A DNA stretch of 64,000 nucleotides, from positions 149,151-213,150 of IMG/VR virus record IMGVR_UViG_3300033997_000136. One strand, given 5' to 3'. Below, piece by piece: positions 3,148 through 48,060 of the stretch. How positions within the stretch are numbered: the first letter of the stretch is position 1; each line of letters opens with the position of its first letter. The notes under the pieces were generated by a model that was not told where the DNA came from, searched no databases, and saw only the letters and a program-made list of their open reading frames with translations. The position numbers were made by a program, and so were the translations under genes.

Positions 3148-4092
3148 TCAGCTTTGGTATTGTTTAGCTACCGCTGAAGCATCATCAATCGATGCACCAA
3201 TGGCTTCTAAGTTAAATGAGAAGATTGAGTAAAATTCAATCAACTGGGCTAAGTTAAATAAGAAATCACCCATGGTCTTTGCAGTCACACCGGATGGTTT
3301 GTAAACATCAGGTTCTTCTTCAAGACGTTGCGCAAGTAAAGTTAGCAGTGGAATGATTGCATCTAACTTCTTCTGAACTACATCCCGTGGGATGGCATTC
3401 ATTTGAAGAATAAGTTCGTTGTACAGTTTGTACACTTCAACCCAATCAGAACTTCTGTCAATAATCTCACCGTAAGGTCTACGTTCAGCATTGTCACGAC
3501 TAAAATCGCTTGCAAAGGCAGTTTTGAGTTTACTCACATCAATCGTTTTAAAACCACCTAAACGTTTATCTTGGTGTAAACTACTTAACGACTCAGGTGC
3601 ATGAAGTAGTGTACTTAAGAAACGTTCTAGCGGTATCAGAATCTGTTCTAAAATAGGTTGCAGTGCTTGTTGAAACATCGCTTGATGGCGAAGATGTTCT
3701 ATTAACGTTGTTTTCAAACCACGAGGCACAATGACTAACTTGTCCATTGCAGCAACATGCTTTGCTTTACCTAAATAGCTTTCAAAACGACGCTGATGTA
3801 AAAACACATCCTTTGTTTCAAAGAATGAAGTAAAGAAAGATTTTGCTGAAAACAACGCTTTAGATAGCGTGTTGCTAATTCTTGCTTTTGCCATCTCAGC
3901 AAACGCCAGAGTTTGTTGCCATGCAGTTTCTGCTTGCATAGTCATCTGTGTTGGGTCTTCTTGACGCACTTTATTTGCATCATCAATTAATTCGCAGTCT
4001 AAATTAACATCATTTAGACACGAAACTAATTCCTGTAGTGGTTCAGTCAATGGACTGTTTAACTCATCTGGCATTAACGCTGGGTATGTCAT
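3148..4092 (-). CDS. probable virion head protein with acidic N-terminal propeptide
   Basis: 314-aa ORF, AAGGA RBS, position between RNase H and UvsX as in phiKZ-like phages; acidic ~50-aa leader ending TMQA. Confidence 0.55.
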   Translation of the reverse strand: MTYPALMPDELNSPLTEPLQELVSCLNDVNLDCELIDDANKVRQEDPTQMTMQAETAWQQTLAFAEMAKARISNTLSKALFSAKSFFTSFFETKDVFLHQRRFESYLGKAKHVAAMDKLVIVPRGLKTTLIEHLRHQAMFQQALQPILEQILIPLERFLSTLLHAPESLSSLHQDKRLGGFKTIDVSKLKTAFASDFSRDNAERRPYGEIIDRSSDWVEVYKLYNELILQMNAIPRDVVQKKLDAIIPLLTLLAQRLEEEPDVYKPSGVTAKTMGDFLFNLAQLIEFYSIFSFNLEAIGASIDDASAVAKQYQS

Positions 4093-21855: not shown

Positions 21856-24800
21856 ATGAAATCATATTTACAGCGAATTGAAGAATTGTTACAAGGCGAT
21901 ATTACCCTTGAAGCAAAATACTTCAAAGAGTTTTACCGTGTGTACGGTATTCGCAATCAAAGCATGTTGATATCACCAAAAGTTTCACCTATCAGTGCGT
22001 TTGAAATGCCTTTGGAATCCGTGGCACACCATTTTAGCTTTGATGATGTGTTGTTAGGTCCTGAGCCAAAAGGCAGTGTGTATTCTACAAATAGTGGTCG
22101 TGTATTGATTGAGCATATCTCTGCACTTCACGACCCTGTTGGAAAACCGCTACCTGCACCAGGTGCAAATGCTGAACGACTGGCACGTGATTATCATCGT
22201 CGAGTAAAAGTGTTTCGTCCAGCGCAAGACTTTGAACGGAGTCTTCGTGATAACAAAACTCTGGTGGTAGAGAACTATGCACTTTTAAACAAGTTGTATC
22301 GTTATCAATTATCCGTGTATAGCAACATCTACAAATGGACAAACATCTTACGTGCTGCTTTCTTTAACCTCGGTAAGAAAGTACCGATGTCAGATAGACA
22401 GCACTATGTGTTTTTAGAGTTACCAGCCATTATTCCAGATATAGTGATGTTAAATCAATCATCTGGTGCCATTACTGCGATTAAGCGGGAGTTCTTAGAA
22501 GTCTTCTCAAAACCAGAAGCGTTAATGATTCTGGAACTTTGGAAATGGATGGGGAAACCTATCAAGCAAAAAGTAGACGGAAAAGAAACGGTTGGTCCTC
22601 GTCCGAGTGTGTTTGATTACATTGCACCTGAGCAGTTAGCAAAGATTAACTTGGTCTGGTTAGACAATGGAAACTGGATACTTTTAAACCTGGGTACATT
22701 TGTTGAATTGTCGAAGATGGACAAAGGTGAAGAGATTGAAGGGAGTAACACCGTTCAACGTCGTTTCCTTCGCATGTTAATCATGTTGATGAGTCAACGT
22801 GTGGATGTCACTGAAACTGCCACTGATATTGAATCAACGATTGACGCGGATGTTGCAAAAGAAGACATCGTTGAGACCAAACATGTTGTTCGTGATGCAC
22901 TCAAATCTATCGAAGCTAACCCGTACGATGATTCCGATTTACCTAATTTGGATATCGTTCAGGATGAACAATTGGTTAGCGTTGATGATGTTAAATCAAA
23001 AGAACAGCAACAAATAGATGAAGAGATTGAAATCCAAAAAGATTTAGATATGCTTCGTCGGTTAAATGAGCGTAAGTTAGCACCACAAGCTCAGACAACT
23101 ATTGTGGATGTTGTTCAACCTCCTAAAACTCCTATTGAACGTTTGAATCGTAAAATAGAAGACAAGGTTGAGAAGGGTGAATTAACTGCAGCAGAATATC
23201 GTCGTGCTAAGAAATTATACGACAACATGCTTGCACTGGACAACCCATTTGGTGATGGAAAGTTACAAGACTTTATTGTTGTTTTTGAAGAGTTGAAACA
23301 GATTACTGAAGAAGAGTCTGTAAAACGTATTAAGAACATTCGTGGTGTTGTTGACAAATCCATGTTAAAAAGCCGTGTAGATGTCTTTGATAAGAAGTAT
23401 GTCACACAAGTCATGGAACGACATATTGCTGCAACGATGCTGTCTGTGCAAGGCGCTGGTCTTATCGCTACTGATTTATCAGTTGAAGAAGTAGTAGATG
23501 TGGGTAACCGTTATAAAACGTTACGCCTTCGTCTTTCACCATTAGAAGGTGAAGGTAGCACTATTGTTGCTCGCATCCCTGTTGTAGACGATGAGGGAAC
23601 GTTCTTAGCCAACGGTACGAAATGGCGGATGAAGAAGCAAAAAGCGGATATCCCTATTCGTAAGACAAGTCCTGTTGAAGTTGCTTTGACAACGTACTAT
23701 GCAAAAGCATTTGTACATCGTTCTGTGAAAAGTGTAGTCAACTATCCAAAGTGGTTAAATCGTCAGATTAACTTACTGGAGATGGCAGACAAAGGTGCGG
23801 TGAAAATAACGCACGTTAAACGGATTAACACGTTTGTAAACGATGTGACGTTACCTCGTATCTACACCACACTTTCTATGTCCTTTAAAGAGTTGACTAT
23901 TGACAAAGACTTACGTTTGTTTGTTGATTATCAACATCGCTTTACAGAGTTTGGTCAGTCGTTTGTCGAGTCTGTTGAGCGAGAAGGGTTTGTGTTTGCT
24001 GGGACACTTAAAGGCAAACCAGTTGTTGTTGACTTTGTAAACATGTTTTACGTCGTTGATAATAATCAATTGCTTGAACTAGGTTCATTTGAAAGTCTTC
24101 TGAAAGTATCGGAACAAAGCGTTCCTACTGAAGTTGCTGAATTTAGTTTGTTCACTCGCCAAGTTCCTGTGGGGATTGTACTGGGGTATCGTTACGGGTT
24201 AATCAATTTACTTGGTTTATTGAATACTCCGTTTCGCCGTGTGTTAAGTGGTCAACAGTTAAACCTTGCTGCAAATGAATTTGCTATTCGCTTTAGCGAT
24301 GAAACCTTAATTGTTTCTCGCGTTGACAAGAAAGCGGAACTTATTCTTGCGGGATTGAATCGCTATCATGCGTCAATTAAACACTACACGTTGGAGTCGT
24401 TTAACAACCCTGATGTGTTTGTTAACGTGCTTGAAGAAAATGGTTTCCGTATTGGTTTTGTTCGGGAACTTGATTTAGCTTTTGACATGTTTGTTGACCC
24501 TGTAAGTGCTGACATTCTGATATCAATGAATGAACCCACTACGTTGGAAGAACTGTTGTTACGTTCGTGTGAATTGTTAACTACAGATGCACATCCTGAC
24601 GAAGTGGATGAATACGCGATGCGTTATCGTGGTTATGAGCGTTTTGCAGGTCATCTGTACAAAGAGTTGGTTTCTGCTACGCGTCAATTCCGCAGTCGTG
24701 GTATTGGTAAAGCAGCAAAACTGAGTATGAACCCAGAAGCGGTTTGGCAGTCTATCATTGGTGACAGTTCTTGTTCACCGATTGAAGAGAGTAATCCGGT

Positions 24801-26205
24801 TCAAAACACAAAAGAGAAGGACATCTTTACGTTTGGTGGTACTGGTGGTCGTTCTACTCGGAGTATGGTGAAACGTACACGTGCGTATCACAAGAACTCA
24901 CCGGGGATTGTATCTGAAGCATCAACAGACAGTGGTAGTGTAGGTGTAAACGCGTACTTGGCTGCTAATGCGTTATTAACCGATGTGACAGGACGTCCTG
25001 ACCAGAGTGCAAATAAGAAACTTGAGAGTAGTAACCTGTTTAGTACAACAGCATTGTTGTCACCTTGTATTGAACACGATGACGCCAAACGAATAGTTTT
25101 CGCTAACATTCAGTATTCACATGCGGTTGCGTGTTCTGGATATGAAGTGTCTCCATTCCGTACAGGAGAGGAGAAAGCGATTGCTCACCGAGTCGGTTCT
25201 TTGTTTGCAGGTGTTGCTGAAGAAGATGGTGTCGTCACTGAAGTAAGTGACCATGCTGTGGTGGTTGAATACAAAGGTGGTAAAAAGAAATCATTTGAAA
25301 TTGGAACACGATTTGGTAATGTGACAGGAACCACTGTACCTCACCGTCTTGTGACTGATTTAAATGTAGGTGATAAAGTAGATATGGGTGATGTAGTGAC
25401 GTTTAACCAAGGGTTCTTTAAACGAGACCGGTTAGACAAACGTCAATGCATGATGATGCCAGGTGTTCTTGCAAAGGTGGCTATTCTTGAAAAGAATAGT
25501 ACATTTGAAGATGCGTGTGTAATCTCTCCACGTCTTGCTGGGTTGTTTAAAACCGAACTCACTGAAATTCGTTATATCACTGTACGTTTTGACCAACAGG
25601 TTAATAACTTAGTTCGTGTGGGTGCACAGGTAGACCTTGAAAGCATCTTATGTACAATTGAAGACGCTGTCACTGCTGATAATGACTTATTTACTGCGGA
25701 TAACATTGATTTGTTAACCACATTAGCAGCGCAAGCTCCTAGTGCAAACGTGAAAGGTCGTGTAGAACATATTGAAGTGCTCTATCACGGTGACGTAGAA
25801 GATATGGGTGAGTCTATTCGTAAGCTGGTTGATGAAAGTGATAAACAGCGTAAACGAAAAGCAAAACAGCTCAATGAACCTATTGTTACAGGTGCTGTAG
25901 ATAGTTCGATTAAAGTAAATAAACAACCTGTTGAGTTAGATACTGCTGTGATAAAGATTTACATCACAAAAGAAATCGACGCAGGGTATGGTGATAAAGG
26001 TGTTTTAGGTAATCAGATGAAAACGATTATCTCTGATGTAATGATAGGCGAACATGTCTCTCAGCGCACAAAAACTCCTATCGACATTTATTTCTCGTAC
26101 TTGTCTATCGCTGCTCGTATCGTGGGGTCACCCGAGTTAATTGGAACCACCATCACATTGTTAAAACTCATGAGTCCACGTGTGGCTGATGCTTATTTTG
26201 AATGA
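21856..26205 (+). CDS. virion RNA polymerase beta subunit, large piece (phiKZ gp178-like)
   Basis: GTFLANG, EHDDAKR, FEDACVIS, GDKGVLGNQMKTII RpoB motifs. Confidence 0.92.
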   Translation: MKSYLQRIEELLQGDITLEAKYFKEFYRVYGIRNQSMLISPKVSPISAFEMPLESVAHHFSFDDVLLGPEPKGSVYSTNSGRVLIEHISALHDPVGKPLPAPGANAERLARDYHRRVKVFRPAQDFERSLRDNKTLVVENYALLNKLYRYQLSVYSNIYKWTNILRAAFFNLGKKVPMSDRQHYVFLELPAIIPDIVMLNQSSGAITAIKREFLEVFSKPEALMILELWKWMGKPIKQKVDGKETVGPRPSVFDYIAPEQLAKINLVWLDNGNWILLNLGTFVELSKMDKGEEIEGSNTVQRRFLRMLIMLMSQRVDVTETATDIESTIDADVAKEDIVETKHVVRDALKSIEANPYDDSDLPNLDIVQDEQLVSVDDVKSKEQQQIDEEIEIQKDLDMLRRLNERKLAPQAQTTIVDVVQPPKTPIERLNRKIEDKVEKGELTAAEYRRAKKLYDNMLALDNPFGDGKLQDFIVVFEELKQITEEESVKRIKNIRGVVDKSMLKSRVDVFDKKYVTQVMERHIAATMLSVQGAGLIATDLSVEEVVDVGNRYKTLRLRLSPLEGEGSTIVARIPVVDDEGTFLANGTKWRMKKQKADIPIRKTSPVEVALTTYYAKAFVHRSVKSVVNYPKWLNRQINLLEMADKGAVKITHVKRINTFVNDVTLPRIYTTLSMSFKELTIDKDLRLFVDYQHRFTEFGQSFVESVEREGFVFAGTLKGKPVVVDFVNMFYVVDNNQLLELGSFESLLKVSEQSVPTEVAEFSLFTRQVPVGIVLGYRYGLINLLGLLNTPFRRVLSGQQLNLAANEFAIRFSDETLIVSRVDKKAELILAGLNRYHASIKHYTLESFNNPDVFVNVLEENGFRIGFVRELDLAFDMFVDPVSADILISMNEPTTLEELLLRSCELLTTDAHPDEVDEYAMRYRGYERFAGHLYKELVSATRQFRSRGIGKAAKLSMNPEAVWQSIIGDSSCSPIEESNPVQNTKEKDIFTFGGTGGRSTRSMVKRTRAYHKNSPGIVSEASTDSGSVGVNAYLAANALLTDVTGRPDQSANKKLESSNLFSTTALLSPCIEHDDAKRIVFANIQYSHAVACSGYEVSPFRTGEEKAIAHRVGSLFAGVAEEDGVVTEVSDHAVVVEYKGGKKKSFEIGTRFGNVTGTTVPHRLVTDLNVGDKVDMGDVVTFNQGFFKRDRLDKRQCMMMPGVLAKVAILEKNSTFEDACVISPRLAGLFKTELTEIRYITVRFDQQVNNLVRVGAQVDLESILCTIEDAVTADNDLFTADNIDLLTTLAAQAPSANVKGRVEHIEVLYHGDVEDMGESIRKLVDESDKQRKRKAKQLNEPIVTGAVDSSIKVNKQPVELDTAVIKIYITKEIDAGYGDKGVLGNQMKTIISDVMIGEHVSQRTKTPIDIYFSYLSIAARIVGSPELIGTTITLLKLMSPRVADAYFE

Positions 26206-27860
26206 GGGAAAGTATGATTACGCAACAAGCAATTGAAGCTGTACAAAATGCTGCGGACAACTTACTGGGGGCAGGCTTTAAAGCCTGCCCCATCGTAGGA
26301 ACTCCGTTGGCTGATTTAGTCTCACGTAGCCAAAACGTTGCGACGGTGGGGACGTCTATTCCATTAGAACGTTTAGTGGAAGCCACATCTATTCCGCTTT
26401 CAGAAGGTGGTCCATCAGCACACGATGTGTTCATGGAGAAGACGGTTGAAGTTGCCGGTAAAGTCGTTACCAATTCATTTGAGTTGACTCGTAATGTCAT
26501 CACTCCTCTGGTAAAACAGTTGATTGAAAACTACGAAGCAACGTTAGGTGGTTTGGTGTATGATGTATTGCCACCGGCACGCATTTTACCTAATATCTGG
26601 AGCAGCATTTGGAGCAGCACACTGTTAGCAGAAATGGTAGCGAAGTTCAAAGACGTTCCATTGGAACTTCGTCCATTTGGTGTGAAGATGCCTGAAATGA
26701 CAGCAAGTCAAATCAGAGCCATGTTAAAGACACGCATTTCACTTTTGGATGCGTCTATTGAAAAGTGGTTCGATGACTTACCTGAAGACTTTGTTCACGA
26801 AACATGGACTCAGGTGTTTGTTTATCAAAACATTGCTATTGGTCGTCGTACGAACTCAAAGTTCTCTTTGGATTCGACTACATTAAATCGTGATTCTATC
26901 TTGTTGGTGTATTTCATCAGTAAAGGTATGGAACAGGCGTTACCAGATGGTTTGAATGTAAGTCTCGATGCACTTCGCAAAGAACTGGTTCATTTACAAA
27001 ACCAAGCTGCTCGCGCTGTGGCTCAGGAATTAGCATTCCGTGAAACCATTCAACGTTCGAATCTACTGGTTGCTTATGTGAATAAGACACCAAACAAAGA
27101 CGGTTCAACGACGTACGATGTTGTGGTTAATAACGATGTCTATCTGAAGTTCTTAAGCGACCCTATGGGTAGTGCGGAAGCTATTTTGGGTAGTGCAGCA
27201 TCAGGTGATGGTGTGTACATGTATTCTGCTTTGTTGGAAAACAAAGTGAAGTACGAAAACTTCTGGGCGAAAGCTTTAGGTGTGCATAATCAAAAGATTG
27301 CAGCGAACCGTTTCACGTTCCAACGCGATTCCTTGCGTTTAACGTTTAACCGTTACATCAACAGTCAAGATGAAGCGAATCTTCCAGCGGTACGTGCTTA
27401 TTTGCATGAGCGTGCAGCAAGCTTCATCAATAAACTGGAACCACGTGATGTTGTTGACCCAGTTGTCTGTATCCGCGATTTAGTGTGCTGTATTTTGTTT
27501 GCAGATAGCAACGCAGGTCAATTCTACAAATCGTTTGACCAGGTGGAGCTTGAAAATCCAAACATCAACACGCGTGAATGTGCGCTTTACGCAACGATTG
27601 ATTTAGTGAGTCGTTGGTTAGCCTCACAAATCCTTCGCAAGTCAGCCAGTGAGAAAACTGAAGTCCCTGAAGACGGACGTTACCTTACTGTGTGTACGTT
27701 GTCGAATGCGATTACGTTGGGTGTGAAGATTATTCAGTCTATTGCAGGCAATGAAATCAGTGACAGTACCGGTGGTAAGTTTGTTGACACAGACGAGCTA
27801 CGTGTTACGTTTACTGCAAAACTGAACAGTTATGTTCACGTTGAGCACAGCACCAAGTAA
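26202..27860 (+). CDS. conserved head/ejection protein (phiKZ gp177-like)
   Basis: 552-aa ORF in the vRNAP-protease operon; assigned by synteny. Confidence 0.55.
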   Translation: MRESMITQQAIEAVQNAADNLLGAGFKACPIVGTPLADLVSRSQNVATVGTSIPLERLVEATSIPLSEGGPSAHDVFMEKTVEVAGKVVTNSFELTRNVITPLVKQLIENYEATLGGLVYDVLPPARILPNIWSSIWSSTLLAEMVAKFKDVPLELRPFGVKMPEMTASQIRAMLKTRISLLDASIEKWFDDLPEDFVHETWTQVFVYQNIAIGRRTNSKFSLDSTTLNRDSILLVYFISKGMEQALPDGLNVSLDALRKELVHLQNQAARAVAQELAFRETIQRSNLLVAYVNKTPNKDGSTTYDVVVNNDVYLKFLSDPMGSAEAILGSAASGDGVYMYSALLENKVKYENFWAKALGVHNQKIAANRFTFQRDSLRLTFNRYINSQDEANLPAVRAYLHERAASFINKLEPRDVVDPVVCIRDLVCCILFADSNAGQFYKSFDQVELENPNINTRECALYATIDLVSRWLASQILRKSASEKTEVPEDGRYLTVCTLSNAITLGVKIIQSIAGNEISDSTGGKFVDTDELRVTFTAKLNSYVHVEHSTK

Positions 27861-28604: not shown

Positions 28605-29363
28605 GTGGCTGCTAAAGTAATTTTTGAAAACTTGATTTTGAAAGGGATGAACAAGGGTGGTACGTTAAAGCCTGATGAAAAGGGCTATTACCCTTGTGTC
28701 GTTGGTGTGTTGGGTGCTGACGATTCTATTGGTGAACACTACTCGATTAACGACCGTGTACGACAGGTGTTTGCAAATTCATCTCAGTTGAACCGTCGTG
28801 CAGCAGAAGGATTGTTGCGTGGTGAGTTTGGTCATCCAGACCCGATGCAGTATGCAAACCAGTTGGCTTTTGAAATTCGTGTTCGTCGTATCGATGAAAA
28901 ATCTGAATCGCATCACATTCGTAAAGTGTGGTTAGAAGAAGGTGAAATCGATGGACGTAAAGTCACGTTGATTATGGCCGATGTGCGACCACAAGGTCCG
29001 TACGGTAAGTTCTTAAAAGACGCATTGGACAACCCGGATTGTAATGTTGCATTCTCTGGTCGCTATTACAGTAATCCAAGCAAAGTGGGTAATAAAGTCT
29101 ATCGTGAGATTTATGCGGTAGGTACGTTTGATTATGTCACTGAACCTGGTCTACGTGGTAGCACAAAATACAACTCACCTCAGTTGCAATCTGCGTCTGT
29201 TCTGATGTTAGACATACATCAGATTCAATCGATTGTGGGTGCTGAAAAGTCAATGAGTTCTCAGCTACGGCAACAAACGATGCAATCAGGTGGTTTGACT
29301 GCGCAGCAGCTTTATGGTGATATTGTTCCGCAACACAAACCACGTAAAGCTTTAACATTCTAA
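28605..29363 (+). CDS. prohead (head maturation) protease (phiKZ gp175-like)
   Basis: LRGEFGHP, SHHI, PQGPYG, NVAFSGR, TFDYVTEPG motifs of the T4 gp21/phiKZ gp175 family. Confidence 0.9.
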   Translation: MAAKVIFENLILKGMNKGGTLKPDEKGYYPCVVGVLGADDSIGEHYSINDRVRQVFANSSQLNRRAAEGLLRGEFGHPDPMQYANQLAFEIRVRRIDEKSESHHIRKVWLEEGEIDGRKVTLIMADVRPQGPYGKFLKDALDNPDCNVAFSGRYYSNPSKVGNKVYREIYAVGTFDYVTEPGLRGSTKYNSPQLQSASVLMLDIHQIQSIVGAEKSMSSQLRQQTMQSGGLTAQQLYGDIVPQHKPRKALTF

Positions 29364-29373
29364 CGGAGTTTAC

Positions 29374-30084
29374 ATGGGTGGTCCAACAAAACGAGATGTT
29401 ATCAGTGCACTTCCTATTTTAACTCGGGATGTTGTTGATGTATTTACACCTGAGGAAGTAGGATATCCTGTATTGATACACATCAGTCATGATGCGTCTA
29501 TCAAGAAGTTTATCCCACGGATATCAGGTCGGACAATGTCCGCTGAAGATAAAACTGTTCCTCGTGTTAGTGTAGCACCCAGTATCTCTGAATGTGTAGC
29601 AGGTCATGGGTCTACGGATTGGTTCCATATTGACAACGGAGACTTTAACAAGCTCTGGCAGATTTATGGATTTGATTACGAGTATGCAGTTCAACCAAAG
29701 ACGTCGTTGTTACCTGATGGTGCGGTTACAAACGAATATTGGTTAGTTACGTACAACAAAGCGACAACTGAATACGTTCCGAAAAAGATAGGAACGTTTT
29801 TCTACTCGGCAATTACATACCGGAAGATTACGAAAGTAGTCGAATTCGATATGTACATTAACGCAGGGGAAAACGGGATTCGTTTTAGTGATGAAGTTTT
29901 CTTAGAGAAAGGATACTGGTTTATTAAAGGGAAGTTAGCGAAGAAGACGGTGAAGAAAGTAATGGCAGGTAAACCACTTGAGGTATTGGCTATGCGTCCT
30001 TCATCTAAATCTGAGTTTGACAAAGAACATCACGGGTTGTTTACGTTTCAATCTGTAGGTGCGCGATTATCCTTGAATTGGTAG
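29374..30084 (+). CDS. conserved virion protein, possible ADP-ribosyltransferase-like fold
   Basis: HIS...F.PR...ED.TVPRVSVAPSISEC...E.W; paralogous to the N-terminal domain of 47170..48060. Confidence 0.5.
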   Translation: MGGPTKRDVISALPILTRDVVDVFTPEEVGYPVLIHISHDASIKKFIPRISGRTMSAEDKTVPRVSVAPSISECVAGHGSTDWFHIDNGDFNKLWQIYGFDYEYAVQPKTSLLPDGAVTNEYWLVTYNKATTEYVPKKIGTFFYSAITYRKITKVVEFDMYINAGENGIRFSDEVFLEKGYWFIKGKLAKKTVKKVMAGKPLEVLAMRPSSKSEFDKEHHGLFTFQSVGARLSLNW

Positions 30085-47169: not shown

Positions 47170-48060
47170 ATGAATGCAAAGTATGGCTATCATCTATCGT
47201 TTAATGGTGAGTTAGAGGGAAAGTGGATACCTAGACAACCCGATGGGTACGATGAGCAGAACAATAAAGATTCTACAATAGGGGAACCATCAGTCGCTCG
47301 AATTAGCGTAGCACCGACTATAGAAGGATGTATTCGTGCTATTTATCCAAACGTATTTAGATTCTTTGAAAAGAATAACTATCCTTACATTGATATGTAT
47401 GTGTACAGTCCAGAGAAGTTATTAAAGCGTGATGTTGTTTCTACAAAAGAGTTAACAACAAAACGCTATGTATGGGATGCACATGTAACAGGGGAGTTTT
47501 GGATTATCCATCCTGTGGTAATGAAACGTATTGCAAAGATACGGATAATGAATCCAGGAAAGAACAATGTGATGCATACGTATCCATTTAATGATAAGTC
47601 AGTGGGTGAATTGTATGACATACGCCCAGCAATCGTGGACTATAGTGTACGCGAATTGTATATTGATGAGGAAGTGAGAATGACCAGTCAAGAAACGAAG
47701 TTAGCTGCATTGATGACACGGTTACAAAGTAGTCAACAAATGCAAGAAGAAATGAAGAAGCTAATCCAGGAAGAAGCACAAGCTGTGCTTATTACTCCAG
47801 CGAACTACGACGAAGTAGATGCTGCTGAGTTTGCACTTGCGGTGCATTCGATGATTAAAGAACCTGAAAAGCATGTGGTGATTATTGCTGAAGAAGATGA
47901 TGGGGTGGTGTATACGGATGAACAAGGTCCTCGTGTACGTCAAGTCTCATCTATCTTAAAAGAAGCCGGTGTGACTGTGTATGACAGTGTAGACGCCTTT
48001 CAAGAAGTGATAGAAGGCCAAACTCATGTGACTGGGGATGATACCACAACGGTAGAATAA
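47170..48060 (+). CDS. two-domain protein: ART-like virion domain plus nucleoside 2-deoxyribosyltransferase-like C-terminal domain
   Basis: YHLS...WIPR...ARISVAPTIEGC...TGEFW; C-terminal VLITP...KEPEK...GVTVYDSV; in-frame internal GAGGA + ATG at 47680. Confidence 0.5.
   Translation: MNAKYGYHLSFNGELEGKWIPRQPDGYDEQNNKDSTIGEPSVARISVAPTIEGCIRAIYPNVFRFFEKNNYPYIDMYVYSPEKLLKRDVVSTKELTTKRYVWDAHVTGEFWIIHPVVMKRIAKIRIMNPGKNNVMHTYPFNDKSVGELYDIRPAIVDYSVRELYIDEEVRMTSQETKLAALMTRLQSSQQMQEEMKKLIQEEAQAVLITPANYDEVDAAEFALAVHSMIKEPEKHVVIIAEEDDGVVYTDEQGPRVRQVSSILKEAGVTVYDSVDAFQEVIEGQTHVTGDDTTTVE

Follow-up and report, generated by a model that had tools for sequence, protein, structure and literature searches.

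Prohead proteases trim head proteins during the maturation of tailed phages, and cleavage after glutamate is shared by the enzymes of T4, phiKZ, 201phi2-1 and SPN3US. In the phiKZ-like phages the protease belongs to the Peptidase S80 family: phiKZ gp175 cuts after Glu in S/A/G-x-E motifs, for example at E163↓N164 of the capsid protein (the arrow marks the scissile bond), while SPN3US gp245 cuts after A-x-E at 14 mapped sites and removes its own C-terminal tail at AQE-203. T4 gp21 also cuts after Glu, in a short motif (PMC5694885). The present locus came to attention because a sequence-only reading noted Gln instead of Glu before two expected self-cleavage sites of a prohead protease, and proposed that protease and substrates had together switched to a Gln-specific code. 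We confirmed the observation, and the interpretation was supported at the sequence level with some restrictions described below.

The protease gene and its surroundings

The window, i.e. the whole stretch of 64,000 nucleotides that was analysed, corresponds exactly to the last 64,000 bases of a 213,150-bp JGI metagenome contig also present in IMG/VR (IMGVR_UViG_3300033997_000136). It is part of a nucleus-forming, phiKZ-like jumbo phage and holds a chimallin homologue, virion and non-virion RNA polymerase subunits, a tail sheath, the large terminase and a DNA polymerase, while ARAGORN found no tRNA genes in the window. In the GenBank collection no nucleotide match was found, and the best protein identities were 36-42% (Burkholderia phage SURPRISE13, Ralstonia phage RSL2). 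Near-identical DNA occurs mainly in subsurface metagenome runs from 2018-2020, with partial matches in wastewater and freshwater runs, and a 201,933-bp ENA assembly runs about 30 kb past the window end, as expected for a circularly permuted genome. The features relevant to this study are the following.

28605..29363 (+), prohead (head maturation) protease, Peptidase S80 family, 252 aa, GTG start; catalytic domain about residues 1-190, C-terminal tail 191-252
28722..28724 (+), Asp40, replacing a near-invariant family Asn; candidate specificity or permissive residue, by inference only
28833..28835 (+), His77, predicted catalytic histidine
29055..29057 (+), Ser151, predicted catalytic serine, followed by invariant Arg153
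29130..29132 (+), Asp176, predicted third triad residue
29178..29192 (+), tail site 1, PQLQ↓S (P4-P1'), Q195 codon CAA at 29187-29189, predicted self-cleavage site
29274..29288 (+), tail site 2, QTMQ↓S, Q227 codon CAA at 29283-29285, predicted second self-cleavage site
29374..30084 (+), gene next to the protease (phrog_5043, weak match to SPN3US gp246), candidate C-terminal site TFQ↓S at 30043-30054
3148..4092 (-), 314-aa protein (phrog_4682, function unknown), acidic N-terminal leader ending in TMQ↓A (3931-3942, minus strand), candidate substrate with weak support
26202..27860 (+), homologue of phiKZ gp177 (annotated structural head protein, phrog_3841), N-terminal ITQQ↓A (residues 6-10, 26217-26231), candidate short propeptide, unsupported

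The protease ORF matched Pfam PF20034 (Peptidase_S80) over residues 7-223 with an E value of 3.6e-59 (200 bits against a cutoff of 23.4) and the PHROG head maturation protease family (phrog_3014) at 1e-57. The surrounding gene order is the same as phiKZ gp181-180-178-177-176-175, SPN3US gp239-gp245 and RSL2 ORF039-033. His77, Ser151 and Asp176 were invariant in 146 aligned S80 proteins and aligned with H77, S153 and D178 of SPN3US gp245, the triad assigned in PMC5694885. An AlphaFold model built on 146 homologues showed a mean pLDDT of 86.3, and its best structural match by a clear margin was T4 gp21 (5JBL, Z 12.5, rmsd 2.5 A over 135 residues), followed by herpesvirus proteases (VZV 1VZV and HCMV 8J3S, Z 6.9 and 5.9). 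This match was obtained in a VIA wide search only, as Foldseek against the PDB returned nothing significant and a profile search of PDB sequences returned nothing. The identification of the ORF as the prohead protease is secure.

The exact 252-aa protein is encoded on six independent contigs from different samples and on two roughly 213-kb JGI assemblies, thus ruling out an assembly artefact. Finally, comparison with the sister phage introduced below showed that the virion RNA polymerase large subunit, a single 1449-aa ORF in the window (21856-26205), is split in the sister (locus L128:1821-7609, Logan ERR11282840 contig) into 1067-aa and 324-aa ORFs, separated by a 334-aa gene with a faint I-HmuI/NUMOD-like hit, which looks like a homing-endonuclease insertion.

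The two tail sites in the Peptidase S80 family

The protease was aligned by MAFFT with 23 close homologues and 150 representatives of 50%-identity clusters, in an alignment of 176 S80 proteins. The tail holds two conserved motifs, SP-[SATG]-L-E↓S (site 1) and x-S-[ML]-E↓S (site 2), in agreement with the sequence-only reading, which had placed xLE↓S and xME↓S sites after the EPG motif of homologues. The two motifs carry Glu at P1 in about 97% of 171 family representatives. Site 1 is E in 167 of 176 sequences and Q in only 5; site 2 is E in 166 of 171 sequences outside the Q clade and Q in the same 5, namely this phage and the proteases P0001 (97% identical), P0002 (64%), P0004 (61%) and P0005 (58%). 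At site 2, P3 changes from Ser to Thr in the same sequences. The concerted switch of both sites in the same five sequences is more than chance. P0003 (60% identical), the protease of the sister phage, belongs to the same well-supported clade (100/100), although the order of branching among the sister and the Q lineages was unresolved, and keeps Glu at both sites, site 1 reading PQLE↓S.

Site 1 aligns with ALE-210↓N of phiKZ gp175 and SLE↓S of RSL2, and site 2 with phiKZ GFE-240↓C and SPN3US ATE-234; ALE-210 and GFE-240 are the only [SAG]-x-E motifs in phiKZ gp175. In the model, site 1 lies in the coil between the folded core and helix 204-216, and site 2 in a linker with pLDDT below 50 (residues 224-229), both sites thus being in flexible linkers. 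Most S80 proteases end in a short tail finishing with Trp after their second cut site, whereas this protease ends in ...ALTF; the protein encoded next to it ends in a conserved ...LSLNW, ten residues after its candidate site, which may be a shared C-terminal targeting or removal signal.

In the 50%-identity library the whole clade collapses into one of 773 family clusters, so the variant is rare, and a metagenome scan for more Q-clade proteases found only another assembly of the same phage. Few columns of the catalytic domain separate Q-type sequences from all others: 38, 40 and 42 in a hairpin loop, and 113 and 115 in another turn. Among these, only Asn40 is a near-invariant family residue, being N in 161 of 171 sequences, D, D, A, A, A in the Q clade and S in the sister. 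Its loss in the common ancestor may have been permissive, although this is inferred from the alignment alone and the E-type sister has also lost the Asn.

Head-protein sites in the same genome and in a sister phage

Since the window has no capsid, portal or internal head protein genes, we looked for these substrates on the same contig. Profile scans did not locate the capsid gene, as the capsid alignment was too divergent and helicase-anchored scans returned 80 other phages but not this one; the contig was then walked upstream with exact-protein look-ups, and positions 38,209-213,150 were recovered without a single mismatch in the overlaps. This yielded the capsid protein (727 aa, PF25620), the portal (910 aa) and two internal head proteins. 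Between the conserved tail/baseplate block and the portal, where RSL2 has its radical-SAM gene block, the contig carries roughly 50 kb (about 74,800-127,000) made almost entirely of small same-strand ORFs, of which only a thymidylate synthase-like gene and one weak hit match RSL2, RSF1, SPN3US or phiKZ.

The capsid protein was aligned with 77 other non-identical phiKZ-like capsid proteins, 71 of them taken from IMG/VR loci. At the maturation site the others showed E at P1 in 77 of 77 and A/S/G at P3 in 76 of 77, in a column that includes the verified SPN3US site (VATE↓Y, ATE-130) and the phiKZ-type VGLE↓N (E163↓N164). This phage reads YTQQ↓SF, and its propeptide holds three further T-x-Q↓S motifs at residues 38-41, 83-86 and 124-127.

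The sister phage (ENA NODE_66, 203,677 bp) was used as a natural control. Its capsid protein P0026, on the same contig as protease P0003, reads TLE↓S, TME↓S and TQE↓S where this phage reads TVQ↓S, TLQ↓S and TQQ↓S. In the portal, this phage has TLQ↓S and TLQ↓A where the sister has TLE↓S and SLE↓S; in internal head protein 1, TLQ↓G twice where the sister has TIE↓Q and TQE↓G; in internal head protein 2, ITLQ↓F faces MSLE↓G, but with an ambiguous two-residue offset. The gene after the protease, which is not known to encode a virion protein (PHROG match at 2.6e-37; tblastn match to the SPN3US gp246 region), has TFQ↓S where the 44% identical sister orthologue reads VTLE↓H. We then counted the Q/E differences in 11,277 aligned columns (49% identity). 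Within the motif context, 11 were own-Q/sister-E and 1 was the reverse, the latter in a non-virion RNA polymerase subunit, whereas outside the context the counts were 36 and 34 (Fisher p = 0.011). The codons checked were CAA here and GAA in the sister, each a single G-to-C change.

The Gln residues are under selection: only 28 of 150 capsid propeptide columns are invariant among four Q-type capsid proteins 48-57% identical overall, and these include T83/Q85/S86, T124/Q126/S127 and T145/S148. Across 196 ORFs of this genome the looser motif of the sequence-only reading, [LMF]-Q-[SA], counted as [LVMF]-Q-[SA], was not enriched (65 seen, 66.6 expected), while T-[LVMFQ]-Q-[SA] was (16 seen, 5.7 expected, z = 4.0), so that the motif is better written T-x-Q↓S/A/G. 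Three of the genome's T-x-Q-A hits belong to a repeat, K-x-A-I-T-x-Q-A-V-T-P, at residues 321, 382 and 443 (spaced 61 residues apart) of an 847-aa protein (contig 125,498-128,041, minus strand), and look like structural repeats of a fibre-like protein, not cleavage sites.

The other sites put forward by the sequence-only reading were located exactly where it had placed them, but fared less well. TMQ↓A, in an ORF whose minus strand that reading did not mention, has only weak support: T-x-Q↓A is kept in two 88-91% identical homologues while neighbouring residues vary, and the homologue search found only 88-100% identical copies, with no E-type comparator. RLQ↓S at 47719-47730, in ORF 47170-48060, is not T-type and lies in a protein that is not a recognised head protein (phrog_10766, unknown), and we treat it as chance. 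The N-terminal parts of this protein and of the 29374-30084 product share a weak motif (R[IV]SVAP[ST]I..C; BLASTP E 0.001) and both touch phrog_5043, suggesting that they may be distant paralogues of unknown function. The virion RNA polymerase N-terminus, with LLQG and TLEA, was uninformative, since the sister's ORF starts after this stretch. HLQQ↓S against VLQE↓S in the phrog_3245 protein and TYQ↓S against EYK↓S in the head-tail joining protein lie in conserved mid-protein or unaligned contexts and were not counted as sites.

Possible explanations and relation to known proteases

Taken together, these data suggest that in a small clade (this phage, P0001, P0002, P0004 and P0005) the preferred residue of the S80 protease before the cut has moved from glutamate to glutamine, with substrates following the enzyme by GAA to CAA changes. 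The enzyme would still enter the prohead, remove its own tail at Q195 and Q227, cut the capsid propeptide at Q40, Q85, Q126 and Q147, and trim the portal and internal head proteins. As no cleavage product has been observed, cleavage of the Gln sites by this enzyme is inferred from sequence, but we consider it likely. Strict Gln specificity is not shown, and the term Gln-specific used in the sequence-only reading is too strong: the portal site aligned with SPN3US ATE-161 is still FTLE↓S, internal head protein 1 has TVE↓N where the sister has SLE↓S, and a related capsid protein (P0028, 48% identical, 20.5-kb Logan contig, not linked to a protease) has TQQ↓S and TLQ↓S in the propeptide but TME↓S at the maturation site, which may represent an intermediate or evidence for a dual-specificity protease. 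These facts fit an enzyme that accepts both Gln and Glu, or one that has abandoned some redundant sites.

A protease that is still Glu-specific, with the Gln positions being retired sites, would have some targets left, namely GAE-214↓K in the tail, the conserved GGE-135 in the capsid propeptide, TLE-167 in the portal and TVE in internal head protein 1, and the triad and nearly all family-conserved residues are unchanged. However, loss of sites would give assorted replacements and decay of the flanking residues, whereas every one of about 12 sites became Q, T at P3 and S/A/G at P1' stayed conserved across capsid proteins only 48-57% identical, and the capsid maturation Glu is otherwise invariant; moreover, GAE-214 sits inside a predicted helix and its P3 is not conserved in the clade (Q, E, E, D). 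We thus consider this explanation unlikely.

Cleavage of the Gln sites by a different phage or host protease, with the S80 enzyme having a lost or reduced role or acting only on the residual Glu sites, seems even less probable. SPN3US has a very diverged second S80-like protein, gp117 (PMC5694885), which a profile might miss, and a preference of the LQ↓S type is probably typical of the unrelated 3C-like enzymes, but an S80 profile search in six frames found only this ORF in the 175 kb examined of the 213-kb genome (about 38 kb were not examined). In addition, the switched sites include the two tail sites of the protease, which homologues remove by self-cleavage, and the S80 gene is fully conserved with an intact triad in all clade members. 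Conversion of Gln to Glu before cutting, by deamidation, RNA editing or unusual decoding of CAA, was considered only because all switched codons checked are CAA, and is very improbable: 161 other Q positions align with Q in the sister, so CAA/CAG is read as Gln in general, no deamidase or editing function was seen, and a site-specific conversion would itself need a recognition system.

A more speculative possibility, which we regard as tentative, is that the clade uses a truly orthogonal code, its protease cutting after Gln and no longer after Glu, having passed through a dual-specificity intermediate made possible by the loss of Asn40, with more than a dozen substrate sites converted one G-to-C change at a time. 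The sister preserves the ancestral Glu code, and the new code could also insulate head assembly from co-infecting jumbo phages. The lineage suggests that a rule treated as a fixed feature of this ancient enzyme line can change without breaking head assembly, and the pair of phages offers a ready-made system to ask how a protease and many substrates change specificity together and which residues set P1 choice in the gp21/assemblin fold. Cleavage-site prediction and proteome annotation in jumbo phages currently search for S/A/G-x-E and would miss every site in this clade.

Full-text literature searches found no report of a Gln-cutting S80 or jumbo-phage prohead protease. By profile, triad, predicted fold and gene context the protein is a member of S80, and shares with phiKZ gp175 and SPN3US gp245 the gp177-gp176-gp175 gene order, the triad positions, a C-terminal tail with two conserved motifs and a substrate set of capsid protein, portal and internal head proteins with N-terminal propeptides. 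It differs from them at the sequence level in having Gln at P1 and mostly Thr at P3 at the aligned sites and in the replacement of Asn40; cleavage after Glu is a property of the characterised members rather than of the family definition. T4 gp21 is the best structural match and has the same role, but uses L/I-x-E sites, not Gln, and no sequence match to solved structures was detectable. The herpesvirus assemblin proteases, which are also capsid maturation proteases that cut themselves, match the predicted fold at lower score and are distant relatives only. The 3C and 3C-like cysteine proteases of picornaviruses and coronaviruses appear to have a similar preference for hydrophobic-Gln↓Ser/Ala/Gly, which would be a convergent outcome; they have an unrelated chymotrypsin-like fold with a Cys nucleophile, the nucleophile position here is Ser151, and no 3C-like protease appeared among the structural matches, so that the resemblance is in the motif only.
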